In this document: one piece after another, positions 506 through 20,568 of the stretch
How positions within the stretch are numbered: the stretch's first letter is position 1
Layout of the letters: every line of letters starts with the position of its first letter
Assembly (NCBI GenBank): GCA_024704765.1
Contig: JAKMXF010000133.1
Location: 682,001-746,000, forward strand
Reading direction: 5' to 3'
DNA: 64,000 nucleotides
Source: Oopsacas minuta
Taxonomy: Eukaryota > Animalia > Porifera
Notes under the pieces: model-generated
Told to the model about the DNA's origin: nothing
The model's database searches: none
Seen by the model: the letters and a program-made list of their open reading frames with translations, nothing else
Translations under genes and position numbers: made by a program

Positions 506-1206
506 TTTGATAATCTCTTGTTATACGAGGGAGATAAGCTACAAATAATGAATAGAATTAACTCAACCATCAAATGAATTGTATAACATATTAACTAAAT
601 TTTCACTGAATTGACATAATCAATTCCTCCTCTAACTCTTGGGCACAATTTTACTGAGAAATTTTTAATGAATATTCATCTAGTTTCGAGATACACACTA
701 GACTCCGTTTAATAAGTTCACATCAGGACCAGGCCATTTTGGCCGTATTAACCCGAATAGAGGTGCTGGCCCGATTAACCGAAGTAAATTGCCAAGTGAC
801 CCGATTAACCGGGTGCTCTATTAAGCTGAGTCTACAATATGGAAATAATTTGGATAGAAACAGAAATTTCACGAAATATTTCGTATAACGTGTGTGTAAT
901 GACATGAATGACATCTTGAACCAATTCAAGATTTAATTCATATGGACAGTGTCTACAATGAGTAATATCTGATATACGCATATAGCGGACGAATAGGATA
1001 TCAGAGTCCAGAATTCGTACATAATGAGACTGCTAAATAGAGAGTGTACACGCAATATCAAAGTAACTTGGAAGATGTATCGCATCAACACATTAAAGTA
1101 AATGTTCTGTGAGAAGTGAACAAACAGAAGCACAGCTGTCAGTCCAATTGTCAGTTGTCAAATGACACCTGACATGAGTTACAGATTGGTAAAATGTTCG
1201 GGTTGC

Positions 1207-3075
1207 TTATTGAAACTTTTGTTTCCGTCTACAATTAGATTTACTGGGTCTAGCTACCCTGCAGGTAGCACTAACTGCTCTTCTAGATCCCTGGTGTTTC
1301 AAAATCTGACACTTAGCCATTTCTTGCTTATACTCCTCATCCAGCATTTTTACATAACAGCAAGGTGAACAACTGGTTGCTGCAGCCGAAAAAAACTGCG
1401 CGTACCCTCCATTGAGTACATACAGCTCTGGGTAATGAAGTTTCGGGAAGGTAGCCTCATTCAATTTCCGGTCTTCATTCCTGAGATATCTATATTGACT
1501 AGGGCCTCTCATGGTAGAAAATTCGCAGTAAAACACTACAATATGTCTCAGGTTAGAAATACGTATATAAGTTGACTTCAAAAAGAATTCATACATCAAT
1601 TGCTCTGTCCATATATTGAGAGCTGTATTTATGTGTCCACCTTTATACTCGTAAGGATAACGTGCATCTACGATAATCAGATTTGAAATGTGCTGTGAAA
1701 ACTCTCCAGCTAGTACTCGTACTAGTGTGATTGGTTCAATAGTCTTTAAGTCTGGATTAGTACCACCACGGATAACAGGTAGAAGATGAGACTCACTGTT
1801 GTCACCGATTAGCTCATCACTGTTATTGGAGTTGAATGACGTATTAGCGGGAGATGAATTAGAACGTAAGACAAGCTGTGTAACAGCTGGAGAGACATGG
1901 AAATCAGGGGGAGTGCTTCCCCCCCGACACACCCTCTTAGGCTGTAAATTAAAAGGACTATTCTGTGTAGAGTTAGTTGCACACGCTGTAGGACACCATA
2001 TTCTACTGTTGATAGTTAGACTCTCAGCTGAGTCAGAAGATGGCGGACTGGGTAGCGAGGGGGCAGAACGCACCTTCTTCCAACGGGTCTGAGGCCGTGT
2101 AGGCGTATGATTATCATTTCTGAAATTAGAAGTAGTCTTAGTTTTGATATCTTCTTTCATTTTGTTCTCAAATGTAACTCTCTTCTGTACAGGCCTGGTT
2201 TTACCAGATCCTCCCCAATGAGGGACGATTTGAGTCGGTGTTATTGCAGAGACTACACCTCTAGCTATAGAGTTCTCTTTCTCTGAACTCACTTCATTCA
2301 CTTTCAAGAACTCTGTTTTACATTCCTTCTGTGCACATACGTTACCAACCACACAATCAGTGAGAGGTTGGCTGATTGTGTGATCTCCCAGCTGATAGGT
2401 AGACAGACAGAACTTATTCGTGGGGTCCTTAAGGGGACTGTTGGACTTAGAAGAAGGGGAAGGTTTATGTGATATAATCTTACCAGTCAGTAAGGTGTCA
2501 AAATCCGCAATCTTAGGTCCAGGAGATGTACGAGTAGTGACACTATTCTCCAGGGTGTTCTGAAATGTGGTCAGCTGTTCAAAGAACAAATCATCATCAC
2601 TATTGAGAGAGGACACCGATGAGGATGAGGAGATGTTCTTTGGGTGTGACAAGCTGGTGGGAGTAGCTTTATGATGTGAGTTATGACCTGATTGCAAGGT
2701 AGAGATTGAGTTTTTTACTAGTGGGGATTCTTTGTGGGGTAAAGATGATACTAATCTATTTTGTGTTTTCATAAGCCCGTGAGGACTCTGTTGTAGACTT
2801 CTTTTAGGTGAAGGGGAGGTGATTACGGGTGCAGAATGGTCCACAATGGTATAGGTCTTAGGAGGACGTACTTTTATAATATCTGAGTATGAATCATTTG
2901 CAAAAGTAGGGGTTGAAGTCGATGCCTTTATTTCAGAGTTATTTTGCTCTGGGGGCGATGTTTCATTACTGCTCGGGAGAGTAAAGCTATCGGAAACGGA
3001 GAAGAGCATACATCTTGGAGTAGAATCGAATATACTAAGGGTGCTATCGTTACATGAACCGAGTGTGTTGTCCAT
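1207..3075 (-). CDS. CDC25: M-phase inducer phosphatase (Cdc25 family), intronless
   Basis: C-terminal rhodanese domain with IIVDARYPYEYKGGHI, VFYCEFSTMRGP (CX5R) and LHYPELYVLNGGY; long Ser/Pro-rich N-terminal regulatory region. Confidence 0.92.
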   Translation of the reverse strand: MDNTLGSCNDSTLSIFDSTPRCMLFSVSDSFTLPSSNETSPPEQNNSEIKASTSTPTFANDSYSDIIKVRPPKTYTIVDHSAPVITSPSPKRSLQQSPHGLMKTQNRLVSSLPHKESPLVKNSISTLQSGHNSHHKATPTSLSHPKNISSSSSVSSLNSDDDLFFEQLTTFQNTLENSVTTRTSPGPKIADFDTLLTGKIISHKPSPSSKSNSPLKDPTNKFCLSTYQLGDHTISQPLTDCVVGNVCAQKECKTEFLKVNEVSSEKENSIARGVVSAITPTQIVPHWGGSGKTRPVQKRVTFENKMKEDIKTKTTSNFRNDNHTPTRPQTRWKKVRSAPSLPSPPSSDSAESLTINSRIWCPTACATNSTQNSPFNLQPKRVCRGGSTPPDFHVSPAVTQLVLRSNSSPANTSFNSNNSDELIGDNSESHLLPVIRGGTNPDLKTIEPITLVRVLAGEFSQHISNLIIVDARYPYEYKGGHINTALNIWTEQLMYEFFLKSTYIRISNLRHIVVFYCEFSTMRGPSQYRYLRNEDRKLNEATFPKLHYPELYVLNGGYAQFFSAAATSCSPCCYVKMLDEEYKQEMAKCQILKHQGSRRAVSATCRVARPSKSNCRRKQKFQ

Positions 3076-3428
3076 ATTTGACGAAGTATTTAGTGAAAGT
3101 TAACTAGCCTAATTACTAATTCACTTTGGCAGACAGTATTTATTGGGTTCTTACTGTGTAATTTGTAAGGGGAAATACGACAATTACTGGAAAGCATTGA
3201 AATCAGCATGCGTGATGTGTGCTCAATGAAACCAATGGTGATAGGCACAGATAACAGGTGATCAGATGTAAATATAGTTTGAAGTTTCAGTTTACTTCTG
3301 TTTATTGATTTTGAAAGGATTCAAAACATTTGTAATTCACCAATTAGTAAATAACGAATACGTAATAAAACTTAATAATGCAATTACTTTTATTGATTCT
3401 AAGTGCCATTTTATTGCTCATAAATAAA

Positions 3429-4028
3429 TCAGGAGGATGCGTCTTCCTCACGAGATCTTTTCATTCTCATATTTTCCTCGTCAATTTTCTTAGTACTCAT
3501 TCCCAATATTCGCATATATAACTCAGGATTAGACTCCCTCATTATTTCTTGGTGAAGATAGAATGGTTTTTGTTTAGCTACAAATGTAGTGAAGAAAGCT
3601 CCAAACCCATCAGCTGGCTGATGTATATCAGACGCGTGTATGCGTGTCACACGTGTACGATAGAACAAGGTAGTAGTGTGAGCTGTGAATATTTCCTGTG
3701 TTTCATTATAATATAGATTATGTATGTAAGCTCGTGTTAGCAAATGCAACAGCCCAGTTGTACCCCAAGAAGCAAGCAAGGTTATACTCACAATCATAGA
3801 TTTACCTAACAGAGGGATGCCTTCCTTACCGAATGCAAGCAAGAATGGAGATATGGATAAAGCTGTAAAGCTTGAAACTAGTGAGACAAGTTTGATTGCT
3901 CTGACAGCTGGCGAAAATGGCCCAGAATATACAAGCTTAGACTGAGTATTACTTTCGTATCTTTTGGAATCTAACTTCCCAGATATAACAGATCGGATGG
4001 AATTTAACTTTATAATTCGAGACAGCAT
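3429..4028 (-). CDS. TMEM70: Transmembrane protein 70 (mitochondrial ATP synthase assembly factor)
   Basis: Basic presequence-like N-terminus, LVYSGPFSPAVRAIKLVSLVSS motif, two hydrophobic segments, TTGLLHLLTRAYI. Confidence 0.75.
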   Translation of the reverse strand: MLSRIIKLNSIRSVISGKLDSKRYESNTQSKLVYSGPFSPAVRAIKLVSLVSSFTALSISPFLLAFGKEGIPLLGKSMIVSITLLASWGTTGLLHLLTRAYIHNLYYNETQEIFTAHTTTLFYRTRVTRIHASDIHQPADGFGAFFTTFVAKQKPFYLHQEIMRESNPELYMRILGMSTKKIDEENMRMKRSREEDASS

Positions 4029-4485
4029 TCAACTAACTACAATGTGTTATCTAATTAGTGCTAATTATACGTTGTTTATAGATAATTGTAAATTTACTAC
4101 TTTAGCATATGTGAATAATCAATGAAAAATATAATTGTAAAGAAATAACTTTACTTACCTGTAAATTAGATAAACAAATCAAAATAGTTTTGTTGTAATT
4201 ATAAATATTCTATACGAAGCCTGGCTTAAATAGAGCAGCCTATTCTATAAATAGTAACAAATGTTTTAGGCAATATATTAAAATACAAATAATCACAAGA
4301 CAGAAACCAACACTGTAGTCATCTATATTATAAACCCTTGTATGAATTTAATAGTAATTATAGGTATTTAATTTCGTAATTAGCAAGTTGATGATGTCGC
4401 ACTGTATCACTATTTTCTTGTTATCCAATATAATTCGCCTTGCAGTATCCTTTTATAGTAGCTTTCTGTTTGAACATACACTAGT

Positions 4486-7400
4486 ATGGACCTGTCGTTA
4501 GCTAATACTACAGTGCTACCAGGTGATATAGTAGGGAAGTGTGATAGAGATACAGTACTATCTTTAGGACCTGGTCTACAACAGAGAGAGGATGGAGATG
4601 TGGTAGCTATAAAACCAGGGTTACTAAAGCATGATAGAAGTAAATACTGGATTGATACACCAGAAAAGCGAGTATGTTATATTTATGTTACATAAATAAA
4701 TAATTATTCCTTCTCTATCCTTTAGTATGTTCCAATGCTTGGAGATATGGTTATAGGAATCATTACTGGGAAGATGGGGGAGAGTTTTAAAGTGGATATT
4801 GGGGCCTATTTGCCCGCACAGTTATCTTTTTATGCTTTTGAAGGCGCGACTAAGAAGAACAAACCCGATTTGAAGGTGAGCTACAACACTATAGTACTAG
4901 ATACGTATTTATATTACTCTAGGTTTGTAGCTGATTGCTAAGTTATTATGGGCGTAGGCCACATTATAGATGAATGAATCTTGGAAGATAAGAGGAGGAT
5001 CCAGACCCGATCCCATCCTCCTGCCCACTTTTTGAATTTTCTGCCGGTGTGAACACTTTTTAGACCTGGGGCTCAAACATGGCCACAACGAACCCCCCTG
5101 AATCCGACTCTTGTAAAGCTATGCTTGACTCCTCGTGTAAGAATAAACTCTGAACATACCAATTTTGATAATGATCGTGATAGGTCAAAATATATTTCGT
5201 AACACTTTACGTATATGGTAGTCACACACTTACATTGCAACTCGTGGAGTGTGATTAGGCATAGTATCTATGTATTGAAACACTACATATTTATCAGGAA
5301 ACATTGTTGCGTAAATAAATGGCAACTCCAACAACTTCACACTGCTACAAGATAGGGACTGAATACCCTTGTGGATATGGAATAATTATTGTGAATACGT
5401 TCGAGAATAGCGATTATGAAAGGAGAGGAGCTGAAGTAGAGAAAGAAGATCTGAGGTCTCTTTTCAAGAATCTTCGCTTGAAGCTAATATTGTATACCAA
5501 CTTATCAGCTAAAGAAATTATTCAGAATTTGACTGACATTTCAAAGAACAATGATCTTTTCGATCATTCAGTTTTGGTAGTTGCAATATCTTCTCACGGA
5601 TCAGCCACTGGTCTGTATGGTGCTGAAATACCAGGGGAAGAATCTAATTTAGTTTCACACAAGGAAATATCTTCTATATTTTCAAGCGGAAATTGTTCTT
5701 TGTTAGTTGGTAAACCTAAAGTATTTATTTTCAACGCATGTAGACGTTATGCTGATAATGTGGATGACGAAAGTAGTGACCGCCAATTCGGGGTGAGTTT
5801 TTCTCAAGAACAAATATTTACAGATGAACAATGTTTGAAGGAGAGCAAACGCGGAACTCTAAACTCAGATATTTTCAATATATATTCTTGTTTGGAAGGT
5901 TTCGTGTCTCTTCGGTCAAGCAAGAGAGGATCACTCTTCATTTCTACCCTGTGTGAAGTATGGAAGGAGTTTGGAAATTCTAAATCTCTCGCGGATATTG
6001 TCACCCACGTGAATAGGAGATTAATCGAGAGGTGTGCTGTATCGAATGATGAGAATGAAGGTTGTGACTGGTCTCAGTGCTGTTTCTGTGACAGCACTCT
6101 AACTTCTGAATTAAGACTGGGAAGGTCTAACGAAGAATCAATTGAGATTGATTCAAGACCTTACCTAAGAAAGAAAGGAAAAGAAGGTCAGAGATGCCAA
6201 AAAAGAAATTCCTTTAGAAATGATAAATACGACAAACATCACGGGAATAGACGGACAGTGAAACCTTCAAGCAAAGACGTAATAAAAATACAATCTCAAT
6301 TTAACAGCTTGCCATCAGAGGAGGCAGAAATTCAAGAGACAGAACTTCAATCCTTAAGCATTCACTCCAAACAAGAAATTGAAATACTTTCTCCATCTGA
6401 TTCCACTATGCTACCCCAAATTAAAAATCCTCCAGCATTTAATCCTCCTGTAGATCTTATATCTAAACCTCCTCCTATGGATATTCTACCAGCTAGTAAA
6501 TGTACTGAGTTCTTATTATGTGGTACAGCATTCGACGAAGTGAACACGGTTTTTATTGCGGATGGTGTGAATGCACGTGTTTGGTGCTGTGACGTCACAC
6601 ACGACTCATTTCCTGGATTCATCTACGATCCTATTTTCGACGCCCAAATACCTTATGCAGTTGTAGCAGATGACAACTTCATTATTGTTACATGTGGAAC
6701 TACTTTGTTAGCTTTTGATGCCGGAACATTCGTAAAAGTTGAAAAATATGAAAATAAACTGGGAAATTTCTCAGGCATTGATATCAATTGGAACAAAGTG
6801 TACGCAGCAAGTAATTTTCTAACATTCGCTATTTATACAGGATCTTACTCATTAGACATGAAAGAGATACCAATGTGTTTAGATGGTTCAAATCTAAAAC
6901 ATGATTTGCATCTGTTAGACTTAAAAGTATCATTGTCATCTATAATACTTCTCTTCAACAATACTACAAATCCTCTATGTGTGTTCAATAAAGAAGGAAT
7001 ATTCCTGAATGTTATCCTACAAACACCAGTCGTGTGTAGCTATAGGTTCTTCACTATGGATCATTTCAACGGTACAATCCTGCTTGGAGAGGAGACAGGG
7101 GGTCATATATTGATAATAGATCTAGATAAACAAGTGTGGACTAAGTATGCATATCCACAGCTGATAGGGCATAAATTGGGAGGTTTATCTCTGCTTGCTC
7201 CAAATTTACTATTCGTAGCAGTTAATACTGACAAGATACCAGGAGATCTGTCGAAGCAGTGTCTTATGCTAAATCTAGAAATATCTTAATTCGTTATATC
7301 TCTATACTTCTACATTCGTATTTATATTATTTATTTACTCTAATTTACTATATCATATATTGTGTCTATTTTATTAATCTCTTAGGTAGGCAGTTTAGTG

Positions 7401-7838
7401 TATGGGAAGCTAACCTCTGTGATAAGAGAGATAGAACCAGTAATGGAGTGTGTACACAGGTCAGGTAAGGCTAGGTTGATGGGACAGCTAGAGGAGGGGT
7501 ACATGGTACGATGTCCCCTACATGTAACCAGGAGGTAAGTAACCATTTAACAACAAGATATGATATACAGCGGAGTTGTGTTTGGCAATGAATGAATGTG
7601 AATTTCGTATAAGATAATGTCTAAAATATTGCGTAGTTTACTTGTGAAAGATTCTCCTCTACTCCATCTGCTACAAGACAACTATACCTTCGAGATAGCT
7701 GTAGGAATGAATGGGAGAGTATGGCTAGACACGAGTAAAATAAAAGATATGGTTAAGCTAGTTAATCTCATTCAAGATTCTGAATTTTCTTCTATGGAAC
7801 AGTTAGGCGAAGCTATTAGAAGCAAAAAATTCGAATAA
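4486..7838 (+). CDS. EXOSC3: Exosome complex component RRP40; 4 exons join(4486..4671,4726..4875,7386..7534,7637..7838), about 228 aa
   Basis: GT-AG introns of 54, 2510 and 102 nt keep the frame: VLPGD...LGPGL...KYWIDTPEKR/YVPMLGDMVIGII...FEGATKKNKPDLK/VGSLVYGKL...EPVMECV...GYMVRCPLHVTRS/LLVKDSPLL...FEIAVGMNGRVW; all are RRP40 hallmark blocks. Confidence 0.93.
5319..7289 (+). CDS. Caspase (peptidase C14A) with N-terminal catalytic domain and C-terminal degenerate NHL-like beta-propeller; nested in EXOSC3 intron 2
   Basis: GIIIVN, RRGAEVE, VVAISSHG, LVGKPKVFIFNACR, SDIFNIYSCLEGFVSLRSSKRGSLFISTLC and STLTSELRL match caspase p20/p10 blocks; the last ~260 aa are repeated beta-strand blades (VFIADGVNARVW, NPLCVFNKEG, FFTMDHFNGTILLGE). 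Confidence 0.88.
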   Translation: MATPTTSHCYKIGTEYPCGYGIIIVNTFENSDYERRGAEVEKEDLRSLFKNLRLKLILYTNLSAKEIIQNLTDISKNNDLFDHSVLVVAISSHGSATGLYGAEIPGEESNLVSHKEISSIFSSGNCSLLVGKPKVFIFNACRRYADNVDDESSDRQFGVSFSQEQIFTDEQCLKESKRGTLNSDIFNIYSCLEGFVSLRSSKRGSLFISTLCEVWKEFGNSKSLADIVTHVNRRLIERCAVSNDENEGCDWSQCCFCDSTLTSELRLGRSNEESIEIDSRPYLRKKGKEGQRCQKRNSFRNDKYDKHHGNRRTVKPSSKDVIKIQSQFNSLPSEEAEIQETELQSLSIHSKQEIEILSPSDSTMLPQIKNPPAFNPPVDLISKPPPMDILPASKCTEFLLCGTAFDEVNTVFIADGVNARVWCCDVTHDSFPGFIYDPIFDAQIPYAVVADDNFIIVTCGTTLLAFDAGTFVKVEKYENKLGNFSGIDINWNKVYAASNFLTFAIYTGSYSLDMKEIPMCLDGSNLKHDLHLLDLKVSLSSIILLFNNTTNPLCVFNKEGIFLNVILQTPVVCSYRFFTMDHFNGTILLGEETGGHILIIDLDKQVWTKYAYPQLIGHKLGGLSLLAPNLLFVAVNTDKIPGDLSKQCLMLNLEIS

Positions 7839-11533: not shown

Positions 11534-13891
11534 TCACGATGAAGTTATTTTCGAGCTTCCAATTTGAATACATATACAACCACACCCTGTAGGACACTCC
11601 CCATTAGTTGAGAACCAATTTCTAACATGGTGGAGATGTCCCCCGTGGTAACACTGGGCACATTTTGAAAAGAGTCCATTCACTAAACAGTTACAAATAT
11701 CACATTTAAACTTACCTCCACCCCAACGTGTAAACTTGTATTCTGTAGGTTTGTCTTGCTGCATACATTTCAATGCTTTACACTCCAAATGGTGTAGATT
11801 CCATCTTGACAGAACTTGTGAATAAATTATCTTATAAAACTCTACTCGTTGATTAATATTTGTATTTCTAATAATCAACTTCGCTTTCTTCTGCATTTTG
11901 ATATTGTACGCTGTCATAAAGCTAGAAATAGTAGCTGCAGCCTGTACATCTCTTATTTTTAGATAATATTCTAGTATTCTAGATACTAGCTCCTCAGCCA
12001 TAAACTGCATGTATAGAGAATAGTTATCTTCTTTAAGGTTAACTAATTGCAATAACAAATGCCACACCTGCACCAAATCATGCCTGTTGTGTGTAGCAGC
12101 TAGTAACCTATTCTTGTAACATGCTTCACTTGGATCACAGTTAAAGAACAGAGTATCTCGAGCTAACCCATAATTCAATCTAGATAGATAGGACAAATCG
12201 AATACTTTAACAGTAGGAGATATATCTTGAGTGTAACGTGTAGCACTTGTAGAACTAGGTTGAGAGAGAGAGTGTGCTAGCTCACGAGGATTCAAACGCG
12301 GAATTAGGTCAGTTTGAGCACGTGTAGTTTTAACAAGAGGATGGACTAGACAGAAACATAGTTTATCATTAGCCCCAAATCTCGCACGCATTAACGGAGG
12401 AGATATTTTTGGCTGTGTGTATAACTCGTTTAAATCCTGATACACACTATTCTCCATGGATAGTTTATGGAAAGATGAGCATAGAGTATCTATACAGTAT
12501 CTTAAACAGAATCTGTTATGAGATACATAGTGAGCAGCTGTTGATGTCAGTGTTTGTATTAGTTCTGATTTAATAGATACTTCGATTAGACCGAGTGATG
12601 TATATATCTCAAAGTTAGGCTCACAAGCTCTAGGATAGAGGGGAGGTAGAGATATCACACATTGTACTATGTTCTTATTATCACTGCTACGCATTTTCAC
12701 AGAGTAGCGACGTTGCCCTATTTGTTGGAAATCAATTCTATCATTCTGGCTGATATACTTTTTGATAAGTTCTACTTCTTCCTGTAAAGATGTAGGTTCA
12801 TAGTGTTCAGTACTCTTGAACTGGTCACTGGCTGCTCCAGTCAGAGTCTGTCGCTTCTTACCCAGAGCTTTTCCTTCCGGATTCTCCATGGATGAGAACG
12901 ACCTTGGATCTACTTGATATAGTGTCATTTCTTTCGATTTTGATATTGTACATAATTTGTATCCATCCTGTTCATGTGTCCACTCCATCCCCACAACCTG
13001 TTCATTCTTACTACCCACAAACCCAGCGTTATCAATCTGCCAGTTACCACTACTACTCTCCCTCAAGCTCCACAAGGTAATGCTAGGACTCTTATGAGTT
13101 ATTATAGTGGAGCAGGTGACCAGACCTCTGCCACAAGGTGTGAATTTAATCCTAGAAACACCATTTTGTCTGTGAGGTTGCTCTGCTAACGGATAAGGTT
13201 CTAACGCATATTGCTCATAATCCCACATCCTGATATATCCGTCTTTACTGGCAGTAGACAGTACTTGTGGTACTTTAGGATGCCAGTCGAAGTTCAATAC
13301 TTTAGCAGGTACATCTAAAAAAGCTAGATACTTGTTACCAAATCTTATATCCCATATAGTGACGATATCTTCATGAGCTAGTGCTATTATTTCTTCTTTC
13401 TCTCTACAGAATTTTATACTGGAGGCTCCTGCTAGTGTTTTTATACGTACACTAGGTTGTGTATTATTTCTAGTGTCCCAAATTAGGACTGATGAGTCGT
13501 AGGAACATGACCCCAGGAGGTTAGGGTCAGAGGACCAATTTATGTCTCTGATAGCTAGAAGGTGTCCTTGTGTGAGACTAAAAGGTTGCGGTACACTGCG
13601 TGCGAAATTCCACAGTTCTAACTTCTGATTAGCTCCAACAGCAAGCAGTTCTTCTGTGTCTGCGTGTATGCCCCACTGTATAGGGCAGTCATTAGCTTTC
13701 TTATCTTGCGTAGAGGGTAGTTTCAGGTCAATCTGCTGTCTCTGTGTAGGCTCGCTAGACTGTAAACCAAAGCTATGTATCATATATTTATTACTGTTAC
13801 TAAGTAGTCCCACTGATGCGTAGTTACCTGCTGAATTGACGGACAGGCTAAGGAGCTCTTTCTCCTGAGTGAATTTCCACACAAAAAGCAT
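11534..13891 (-). CDS. WDR59: GATOR2 subunit WDR59 (Sea3), intronless
   Basis: N-terminal WD40 repeats (GHLLAIRDINWS, SCSYDSSVLIWDTR), RWD-like segment (ISLPPLYP), C-terminal RING-like CDICNCLVNGLFSKCAQCYHGGHLHHVRNWF...CPTGCGCIC. Confidence 0.85.
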   Translation of the reverse strand: MLFVWKFTQEKELLSLSVNSAGNYASVGLLSNSNKYMIHSFGLQSSEPTQRQQIDLKLPSTQDKKANDCPIQWGIHADTEELLAVGANQKLELWNFARSVPQPFSLTQGHLLAIRDINWSSDPNLLGSCSYDSSVLIWDTRNNTQPSVRIKTLAGASSIKFCREKEEIIALAHEDIVTIWDIRFGNKYLAFLDVPAKVLNFDWHPKVPQVLSTASKDGYIRMWDYEQYALEPYPLAEQPHRQNGVSRIKFTPCGRGLVTCSTIITHKSPSITLWSLRESSSGNWQIDNAGFVGSKNEQVVGMEWTHEQDGYKLCTISKSKEMTLYQVDPRSFSSMENPEGKALGKKRQTLTGAASDQFKSTEHYEPTSLQEEVELIKKYISQNDRIDFQQIGQRRYSVKMRSSDNKNIVQCVISLPPLYPRACEPNFEIYTSLGLIEVSIKSELIQTLTSTAAHYVSHNRFCLRYCIDTLCSSFHKLSMENSVYQDLNELYTQPKISPPLMRARFGANDKLCFCLVHPLVKTTRAQTDLIPRLNPRELAHSLSQPSSTSATRYTQDISPTVKVFDLSYLSRLNYGLARDTLFFNCDPSEACYKNRLLAATHNRHDLVQVWHLLLQLVNLKEDNYSLYMQFMAEELVSRILEYYLKIRDVQAAATISSFMTAYNIKMQKKAKLIIRNTNINQRVEFYKIIYSQVLSRWNLHHLECKALKCMQQDKPTEYKFTRWGGGKFKCDICNCLVNGLFSKCAQCYHGGHLHHVRNWFSTNGECPTGCGCICIQIGSSKITSS

Positions 13892-19335: not shown

Positions 19336-20568
19336 ATGGCGAGTGTAGGTAAAGATAACGACGAGTTCCTAACACAAATTGAATCTACTCGGACCGAGCT
19401 GAGAGATAAATTCTCTAAGGTTTATAATCTCCTAAAAGAGAAAGAAGAAGGTCTCTTAATTCAGTTGAAAGAAATTGAGGATTCGTACTTAAGAGAAAAT
19501 AAGAGATTAAGTGATGAGAAAAAAGAACTCTTAGGTACGAAAGAACATCTACAAACCAACATAAGAAGAAATAGGAATCAAACCACACTACAGGAAATGC
19601 TATCTCCTCTTGAAGATAAGCTGAGAAAACTAGAAAATGAAAGAGATGATGATATGCAACGAATAGAATTGATCTGGGAGAGGGAAGGAGAACTAGAATC
19701 AATTTTAGAAGTACTCTGCTCTATTAGACTATCTAAAGTGATGGATTATAACAAAAGCACACCTGTACTCTTTGGTTGTAAATACAGGCAAAATTCAGTT
19801 GAACCAGGCGAATTCAATTATCCTACCGCTGTAAAAATACACCCAAGAACGAATAACATGTACGTATGCGATGAAGCTAGAAGTCGTATACAAGTGTTCA
19901 ATATGCATTGTGAATTCTTATTCTCGTTTTCGGAGAATATGAACTTTCCCGCTGGTATTTGTTTTTACAATGACAAAGTCTACGTAACTCAGTTTTTAGG
20001 TCACAAAATCAATGTTTATTCTGTTAAATCTAACTTTATTACATCAGTAGGAAGATGGGGAAATAAAGAATCACAGTTTGATTCTCCTTTAGGAATTGAT
20101 ATTTCTGAAAGTAGAAAGAAGCTTTATATTTGCGATAGAAATAATAACAGAGTCCAGATTTTGAATACTGATCTTTCTTTTAACGCATTTATCACGGGAT
20201 TTAGGTGGCCAATTGATCTTAGAGTTGTGAAAGAAGAAATCTTTATTCTAGACAGGAGGAACCCCTGTCTCCATGTTTATGATCATGAACGTAAATTAAT
20301 TAGAGAGTTTATTTCTTTCGGTTATTTTTCGTATCAGGTATCTAATACATCACACCTCTGTATCGACTTCCGTTCAAATATTCTCATGACTGATCGTACA
20401 GCTTGTTGTGTTCTGGTATTTTCTAGAGATGGTAAACTGGTTCAGAAATTCGGGAACAAAGGTGATAATGCTGGTGAATTTCAGTCTCCAAGAGGAATTG
20501 CTATTGATTCGGAGGGGAGGATTGTTGTAGTGTCTTCCAATCCAAATCATTGTATTCAATTCTTCTAG
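19336..20568 (+). CDS. Coiled-coil plus NHL-repeat beta-propeller protein (TRIM-NHL-like, no RING or B-box)
   Basis: N-terminal heptad Glu/Lys/Leu helix, then NHL blades: GEFNYPTAV, FPAGICF, QFDSPLGIDI...YICDRNNNRVQI, GEFQSPRGIAIDSEGRIVV. Confidence 0.9.
   Translation: MASVGKDNDEFLTQIESTRTELRDKFSKVYNLLKEKEEGLLIQLKEIEDSYLRENKRLSDEKKELLGTKEHLQTNIRRNRNQTTLQEMLSPLEDKLRKLENERDDDMQRIELIWEREGELESILEVLCSIRLSKVMDYNKSTPVLFGCKYRQNSVEPGEFNYPTAVKIHPRTNNMYVCDEARSRIQVFNMHCEFLFSFSENMNFPAGICFYNDKVYVTQFLGHKINVYSVKSNFITSVGRWGNKESQFDSPLGIDISESRKKLYICDRNNNRVQILNTDLSFNAFITGFRWPIDLRVVKEEIFILDRRNPCLHVYDHERKLIREFISFGYFSYQVSNTSHLCIDFRSNILMTDRTACCVLVFSRDGKLVQKFGNKGDNAGEFQSPRGIAIDSEGRIVVVSSNPNHCIQFF

Follow-up and report, generated by a model that had tools for sequence, protein, structure and literature searches.

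How is a caspase controlled if its catalytic domain comes first and a β-propeller comes last? The glass sponge Oopsacas minuta has a gene that raises this question. It lies in a window of 64,000 nucleotides (C133:682001-746000 of the O. minuta genome assembly, which has 61.46 Mb in 365 contigs; unless another locus is named, positions below are positions in this window). A single uninterrupted open reading frame (ORF) of 656 codons plus a stop encodes a caspase domain, a linker, and an NHL-type propeller. With moderate confidence, we propose that this is an expressed, intron-less gene for a probably active caspase, in which a C-terminal NHL propeller replaces the N-terminal death-fold prodomain, and that the propeller is a recruitment or regulatory module from which the catalytic domain is released at D278.

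5319..7289, + strand: complete, single-exon ORF for the caspase-linker-propeller protein, 656 amino acids plus stop (from the ORF listing, the full-length orthologues, and the lack of an internal splice joint)
5361..6116, + strand: caspase catalytic domain (residues 15-266; p20-like and p10-like parts)
6492..7286, + strand: six-bladed NHL-type β-propeller, invisible to Pfam (residues 392-656)

An initial annotation, made by reading the DNA alone, had described a protein with the caspase first and the propeller last. We confirmed this layout: Pfam places the C14 peptidase at residues 22-236, and the propeller occupies residues 392-656. The DNA in which the ORF lies has a G+C content of 35-36%. 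We rejected an artefact of gene fusion or of annotation because the protein is encoded by one ORF that is retained in at least eight assemblies.

The C-terminus is an NHL propeller

The C-terminus had been read as degenerate NHL-type blades. When residues 392-656 were scanned alone against Pfam, no family was found at E up to 1, and the profile of the NHL repeat, PF01436, whose clan includes SGL and DUF5128, was unmatched. The AlphaFold2 (AF2) model of these residues has about 24 strands that form six four-stranded blades, with a pLDDT (predicted local distance difference test score) of 75-90, so the C-terminus does model as a β-propeller. A Foldseek search with this model returned propellers only, and NHL domains and the NHL-derived Pizza6 designs were best by target coverage and root-mean-square deviation. 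Foldseek and VIA both support an NHL propeller: the fold is six-bladed and is nearest to solved NHL domains. In the ESM Atlas, NHL clusters score 0.95, and the Atlas's own model has a TM (template modelling) score of 0.79 to a six-bladed NHL family.

Profile searches lead to the same family. A profile of the eight orthologous propellers (described below), compared exhaustively with 1.84 billion representatives, matched just 12 proteins. Four of these, all with E of 1e-31 or better, are members of the group: three full-length proteins and a 121-amino-acid fragment. The remaining eight matches are weak (E from 4e-7 to 4e-4), and all seven of those that we scanned contain Pfam NHL; one weak match, P0041, is a 911-amino-acid caspase-PT-NHL protein. 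Using hhalign, we also aligned the propellers of the window group with those of a second set of caspase-NHL proteins (the tandem-pair group, see below), most of which are Pfam NHL-positive, and obtained a probability of 98% and an E value of 2.4e-13 over 218 collinear columns. A search of the sponge's own genome also matched stand-alone NHL proteins. The C-terminal propeller is therefore homologous to true NHL domains, and the reading of its blades as degenerate NHL repeats was correct.

One stand-alone NHL-repeat protein, of 410 amino acids, is encoded 12 kb downstream in the window (19336-20568, + strand; Pfam NHL, E = 2.6e-21). We considered whether the propeller might be a local duplicate of this neighbor and rejected the idea (hhalign probability 0.4%).

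The catalytic domain has an altered pocket

Peptidase_C14 (PF00656) is the sole Pfam family in the protein (E = 3.9e-36; 125.3 bits, against a cut-off of 21.4). The closest solved relatives of the catalytic domain are caspase-3 (E = 4e-20) and next caspase-9 and caspase-6. Residues 15-266 have the caspase/hemoglobinase fold, with p20 and p10 parts. (A full-length AF2 run with 8 sequences modelled the caspase domain poorly, with pLDDT 20-65, and we re-modelled the domain alone with 31 sequences.) The alignment to caspase-3 and a table of sites in 49 caspase domains (42 from caspase-first proteins and 7 canonical) identify the following residues.

5421..5423, + strand: Arg35, equivalent to Arg64 of caspase-3 in the S1 pocket (Arg in 49/49 caspase domains)
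5595..5597, + strand: catalytic His93, in an SHG motif, matching His121 of caspase-3 (His in 49/49)
5733..5747, + strand: pentapeptide NACRR (N139 A140 C141 R142 R143), replacing QACRG
5913..5915, + strand: Arg199, equivalent to Arg207 of caspase-3 in the S1 pocket (Arg in 8/8 orthologues)

The catalytic Cys141 aligns with Cys163 of caspase-3, and all 49 aligned domains have Cys at this position. Thus, the His and the Cys are intact and the S1 arginines are kept, as had been claimed. Two of the three S1 residues of caspase-3 (Arg64, Gln161, and Arg207) are retained as R35 and R199, and Gln161 is replaced by Asn139. The pentapeptide departs from QACxG at positions 1 and 5. The initial annotation was right that the motif is NACRR, but the Asn is not peculiar to this gene: every one of the 42 caspase-first domains has Asn where the pocket Gln should be, whereas all 7 canonical O. 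minuta caspases retain Gln. At position 5, Gly has been lost solely in the window orthologue group.

The first residue of the pentapeptide forms part of the binding pocket, and Dronc of Drosophila, whose pentapeptide is PFCRG, is active and can cleave after either Glu or Asp (PMC2180229). Given this precedent of a non-Gln pentapeptide, a changed P1 preference is a reasonable prediction for the window protein. The replacement of Gln by Asn probably widens or shifts the preference (Asp, perhaps Glu too) and does not abolish activity.

Alternatively, the protein might not be a working protease at all and might instead be a pseudo-caspase or a regulator like c-FLIP. In favor of this, the pentapeptide deviates at two of five positions (Asn for Gln, and the loss of Gly165) and two pocket tryptophans are replaced. 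However, pseudo-enzymes usually lose catalytic and pocket residues, and here the His, the Cys, and both S1 arginines are invariant in all of the orthologues; the His and the Cys are present in all 42 caspase-first proteins. Because the catalytic dyad, both S1 arginines, and an Asp in the inter-subunit loop are under selection, we consider it very likely that the window protein is an active protease. A second form of this alternative is taken up with the transcript evidence.

The caspase-first family

We found full-length orthologues of the protein in at least seven other ENA assemblies, with 39-55% identity over the whole length (some have 52-55% identity with 100% coverage). Compared pairwise, the eight orthologues are on average 60% identical in the caspase domain, 62% in the propeller, and 30% in the linker. 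The protease and the propeller are thus under equal purifying conservation.

Word-index searches identified 29 proteins of the tandem-pair type and, as full-length relatives of the window protein, 8 more. The caspase is first in all of them, and nearly all are from ENA assemblies. According to these searches and the exhaustive search of 1.84 billion representatives, the fusion is confined to O. minuta and to ENA/Logan assemblies, three of which share the window's micro-synteny. When 11 diverse family members were combined into a profile, a word-index search with it brought in no member from any named organism besides O. minuta. These results support the proposal that the architecture is lineage-specific. 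It had also been stated that no described caspase-NHL fusion was known. This holds for the literature, in that we found no published description of such a fusion in the literature that we searched, with most subscription journals outside it. It does not hold for the sequence databases, in which the architecture is already present, unnamed or auto-named, in about 40 protein clusters. One of these is an O. minuta paralogue from contig C22 that is letter-identical to the NCBI/UniRef entry 'Caspase-9-like isoform X5 [Oopsacas minuta]'.

Searching the O. minuta genome with the window protein gave 38 matches, mostly to the caspase part of the query. The two nearest relatives are the C22 tandem pair (L003 and L004; G000:C22:778300-784723), each of which begins with a caspase and ends in a Pfam-positive NHL/DUF5128 propeller (Pfam NHL scores of 25.5 and 25.8 bits; the cut-off is 20). 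The caspase halves of the pair are 54% identical, and from residue 241 on the two proteins are 99% identical. Gene conversion of the propeller half would be expected to leave such a sharp boundary. In contrast to the caspase-first proteins, seven ordinary O. minuta caspases have QACRG or QSCRG, a C-terminal catalytic domain, and N-terminal extensions.

In a quick maximum-likelihood tree of the 49 caspase domains, a branch separates all 42 caspase-first domains from the 7 canonical ones (support of 94 by the Shimodaira-Hasegawa-like approximate likelihood ratio test). On the caspase-first side are the window group (8), which is a clade of its own (support 97), the tandem-pair group (29), a caspase-SH2 protein, and three 'NKCR' genes. 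The root is approximate because of the long branches in the canonical outgroup. A single origin, with the caspase-first clade derived from one ancestral caspase-NHL fusion, would fit the tree. The window gene is a divergent single-copy member of a small sponge caspase-first family that is apparently undescribed in the literature.

The searches also brought up caspases with other partners. L008 (1417-2898, + strand) and L009 are tandem caspase-first genes (G000:C266:252210-257395) whose pentapeptides are NKCRN and NKCRT, and one gene of this pair has a 230-amino-acid Ser/Pro-rich tail, made of SPSNAST units, in place of a propeller. We rejected a propeller at the C-terminus of L008 (494 amino acids): its tail is a Ser/Pro-rich low-complexity repeat and gave no hhalign match. 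P0009, from a Logan contig of 1906 bp, has 484 amino acids; its caspase-first domain, which has an Asn pocket, spans residues 11-264, and an SH2 domain (PF00017) lies at the C-terminus. L010 (G000:C88:298500-308499, ORF 1201-7008 on the + strand) belongs to the conventional caspases of this genome and encodes, in a single ORF, a 1936-amino-acid protein with Roc and COR-A domains (a ROCO GTPase). Its caspase domain, a canonical one with QACRG, occupies residues 1678-1934 at the very C-terminus (Pfam E = 6e-50). This ROCO-caspase fusion may be notable in itself, and L011 (C99) is a related caspase ORF of 1347 amino acids.

A gene nested within EXOSC3

The ORF lies wholly within an intron of EXOSC3/RRP40, an essential gene, and this intron splits the S1 domain. 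We searched the EXOSC3 exons against Pfam one by one.

4486..4671, + strand: EXOSC3/RRP40 exon 1 (Rrp40_N; Pfam PF18311, E = 1.1e-8; GT..AG joint 4671>4726)
4726..4873, + strand: EXOSC3/RRP40 exon 2 (S1 domain, profile positions 1-49; Pfam PF21262, E = 8.5e-18)
4874..7383, + strand: EXOSC3 intron 2, 2510 nucleotides, with the whole caspase ORF inside on the same strand (run X4 has a contig with the GT..AG joint 4873>7384)
7384..7532, + strand: EXOSC3/RRP40 exon 3 (S1 domain, profile positions 51-83; Pfam PF21262, E = 5.7e-6)
7635..7838, + strand: last EXOSC3/RRP40 exon (KH domain, KH_6; Pfam PF15985, E = 1.9e-10; joint 7532>7635)

The same nesting is found in the three other assemblies that we examined (L001, L015, and L016), whose caspase proteins are 39-55% identical to the window protein. 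These loci share the gene order Snf7, rhodanese, TMEM70, RRP40 exons, caspase, RRP40 KH exon, SPRY, mS5, WD40-RING. Since both the gene order and the intron position are conserved in three assemblies, the nesting is old and the proteins are orthologous. From the shared micro-synteny, we infer that the three assemblies are from other glass sponges.

Four sequencing runs, from one study and one sample, contain the stretch, and none is recorded as RNA. Runs X1-X3 are DNA-like, in that the depth is flat and joints are absent. In run X4, contigs carry the GT..AG joints 4671>4726, 4873>7384, and 7532>7635. Other X4 contigs span the caspase ORF without any internal joint; splicing before the propeller, which would have undone the initial reading of the protein, is thus not seen in these contigs. 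In X4, the upstream intron has a word depth of about 390-440; over the ORF the depth is about 900-2660, and past the stop it is about 540. Although contig depth measures expression poorly, the rise over the ORF is consistent with a separate mRNA.

The alternative in which there is no working protease could also take the form of a functionless ORF that is merely carried in the intron. Indeed, the ORF sits inside another gene's intron and has no obvious polyadenylation signal of its own. But it has been kept open, with 39-55% identity over its full length, in at least seven other assemblies, and the X4 word depth is higher over the ORF than in the flanking intron. Taking the two forms together, we regard it as highly improbable that the gene does not encode a working protease.

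Candidate cleavage sites and the role of the propeller

If the protein is an active caspase, then what would the propeller do? Two disordered regions and the short conserved motifs within them suggest an answer.

5757..5852, + strand: disordered inter-subunit loop (residues 147-178; pLDDT <50)
5814-5825, + strand: IFTD169 in the inter-subunit loop, candidate processing site ((I/V)(F/Y)(T/S)D in 7/8 orthologues)
6129..6491, + strand: disordered linker of variable length (residues 271-391; pLDDT 20-29)
6141..6152, + strand: IEID278 followed by Ser (I-x-x-D, then S/A/C), just past the catalytic domain, candidate caspase cleavage site
6210..6215, + strand: invariant Ser298-Phe299, a conserved short linker motif (mostly Arg/Lys at -3, R-x-x-S-F)

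The linker ranges from 88 to 277 amino acids among the eight orthologues. In P0003, P0004, and P0007 (L016 5001-7388), it reaches 234-277 amino acids by means of tandem Pro-rich units (PKDPIQTT-like), and the flanking domains are still conserved. Amid this variable stretch, I275 and D278 are invariant in 8/8 orthologues, and the next residue is Ser, Ala, or Cys. The two Asp motifs, IFTD169 and IEID278, are candidate self-processing sites. As for Ser298-Phe299, with its basic residue at -3, it resembles a basophilic kinase site or a docking motif.

In the mechanism that we propose, the propeller would act as a recruitment or regulatory module that is bound to a conserved partner, probably a protein or a peptide. 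Binding of the partner would bring two molecules together, much as initiator caspases are brought together by CARD and DED platforms. Self-cleavage would follow at IFTD169 in the inter-subunit loop, and a second self-cut after IEID278, before the Ser, would free the catalytic domain from the linker and the propeller. We favor a conserved partner over a variable foreign ligand because the propeller of this single-copy gene is as conserved as the protease (62% versus 60%).

An RNA or a microbial ligand is another candidate for what the propeller binds. It might bind RNA, as in Brat, LIN-41, and TRIM71, or a microbial ligand, and so trigger the caspase as a death switch in innate immunity; the initial annotation had likewise suggested a sensor for a ligand or RNA. 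The best structural matches of the propeller in the PDB are RNA-binding TRIM-NHL propellers (5ex7, 4zlr, 8j72, and 6fq3), some of them solved with RNA, and in sessile marine animals, the immune repertoires contain expanded sets of proteins that join an effector to a propeller (PMC8195603). However, sequence identity to the RNA-binding NHL domains is just 14-17%. Furthermore, the propeller is acidic in 8/8 orthologues (isoelectric point 4.4-5.2, net charge -6 to -15, both figures being for the whole domain), which makes RNA binding of the Brat/TRIM71 type less likely. Nor does the gene behave like a diversifying receptor: it is single-copy, it has a fixed position, and its propeller is 62% conserved. 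We consider an RNA or microbial sensor to be quite improbable.

Another possibility is that the propeller serves as a substrate-recruiting exosite. The enzyme would stay whole, and the NHL domain would bring set targets to the active site of a targeted, non-apoptotic protease. A propeller that is conserved like the protease, in a single-copy and syntenic gene, fits one fixed partner; NHL propellers are general platforms for interactions with protein and RNA, as the PDB matches illustrate; and a flexible linker of 88-277 amino acids would permit tethered reach. Against this, the invariant I-x-x-D, followed by a small residue and placed exactly at the end of the catalytic domain, would need some other explanation. 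We think that an exosite is unlikely as the main role, and it and an activation module are not mutually exclusive.

Returning to release of the catalytic domain by self-cleavage, several observations count against it, or against the activity and expression that it presupposes. The reading of the two motifs as cleavage sites is based solely on conserved I-x-x-D motifs. The inter-subunit motif (I/V)(F/Y)(T/S)D is absent from P0008, the most divergent orthologue, and in a non-systematic look by eye we saw no clear equivalent of the post-domain site in the NHL-positive paralogues. The full-length AF2 model has a predicted TM score of 0.43 and is uninformative on contacts between the domains. In the active site, Asn is shorter than Gln and could weaken the binding of Asp, and the equivalents of both Trp206 and Trp214 of caspase-3 are Leu. 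(The Trp214 equivalent is Leu in 8/8 of the window group and aliphatic or Phe in nearly all caspase-first domains, while it is Trp in 5/7 canonical ones.) With Asn for Gln, Leu for both tryptophans, and the loss of the position-5 Gly, the specificity or even the efficiency of the enzyme may differ strongly from that of other caspases. As to expression, run X4 is not recorded as RNA, its RNA nature being deduced from the contigs with GT..AG splices. Also, the 95 AT-rich nucleotides between the caspase stop and EXOSC3 exon 3 (7290-7384) contain no AATAAA, so the nested mRNA may extend into the EXOSC3 exons and share the 3' end of EXOSC3.

Other genes in the window

The window is gene-dense and has many long, intron-poor ORFs of animal type, including TMEM70, mitoribosomal S5, SPRY, MIF4G/MA3, VIT-VWA, and an actin-related protein. 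An intron-less ORF at 41379-43334 (+ strand) encodes an actin-fold protein of 651 amino acids (Pfam Actin, E = 3e-54), which is long for an actin or an Arp. At 11534-13891 (- strand), another intron-less gene encodes a 785-amino-acid protein with a WD40 propeller and a C-terminal RING (zf-RING_16).

Implications

As far as we know, every characterised animal caspase pathway has N-terminal death-fold prodomains and a Gln-containing Asp pocket. We found that a C-terminus that Pfam does not see is the same NHL propeller as in the paralogues, that the gene is a conserved single-copy branch of the family, that the change from Gln to Asn is a clade-wide signature tied to the reversed layout, and that an invariant I-x-x-D separates the two halves of the protein. 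A broader hypothesis, which we put forward tentatively and hold to be doubtful as a whole, is that glass sponges have a way to activate true caspases independently of death folds, that a C-terminal NHL propeller is the activation platform in the caspase-first clade, and that the Gln-to-Asn pocket of this clade gives a P1 specificity unlike that of all characterised animal caspases. The window gene would be the conserved 'housekeeping' member, with one endogenous partner, and possibly co-regulated with EXOSC3. If this is true, then the scheme of caspase activation and specificity was more plastic in early animal evolution than textbook models have it. The significance is limited in that the function is deduced only and that the family is already present in databases. 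In any case, the gene is a clean example of a same-strand gene that has long been conserved within an intron of the essential gene EXOSC3.

Comparison with known systems

In animal caspases (MEROPS C14A; caspase-3, -7, -8, and -9), the interaction modules precede the catalytic domain. In the window protein, by contrast, only about 14 residues precede the catalytic domain, and the interaction module follows it at the C-terminus. The protein lacks a CARD, a DED, and a death domain, has Asn in the pocket within NACRR, and has Leu in place of Trp206 and Trp214. Dronc likewise lacks the pocket Gln, but it has Pro there, where the window protein has Asn139. Furthermore, Dronc carries a CARD at its N-terminus, and its activation takes place on the Dark apoptosome.

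For the TRIM-NHL proteins (Brat, Mei-P26, TRIM2/3, TRIM71/LIN-41, Thin, and NHL-2), identity is just 12-17%, and the window protein lacks their RING, B-box, and coiled coil. In those proteins the partner of the propeller is an E3 ligase; here the partner is a protease and the propeller is acidic. We rejected membership in this family, as PF00656 alone is found N-terminal of the propeller.

In prokaryotic orthocaspases, the C14 domain comes first and repeat or propeller domains, including WD40, commonly follow at the C-terminus, without a p10 (PMC5756287). The window protein shares this order of modules, which is an analogy and not membership. In contrast to the orthocaspases, it is a true caspase with both p20 and p10, its pocket is lined by Arg as in Asp-specific enzymes, and its propeller is NHL rather than WD40. 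Orthocaspases prefer basic P1 residues. Assignment to the metacaspases, paracaspases, or orthocaspases (C14B) was rejected, since the best solved matches are all animal caspases, two pocket arginines are kept, and a p10-like part is present.

A further close system is the C22 tandem caspase-NHL pair with its ENA homologues, which have the same architecture and the same Asn-x-Cys-Arg signature as the window protein. The caspase domains of the pair are the nearest paralogues of the window caspase (38% and 35% identity). The proteins of this system are encoded in tandem pairs and have short linkers, NGCRG, and Pfam-positive NHL propellers. The window gene, in contrast, is single-copy and lies in the EXOSC3 intron, and its protein has a propeller that Pfam does not detect, a long disordered linker, an invariant I-x-x-D, and a pentapeptide that has lost the Gly at position 5.

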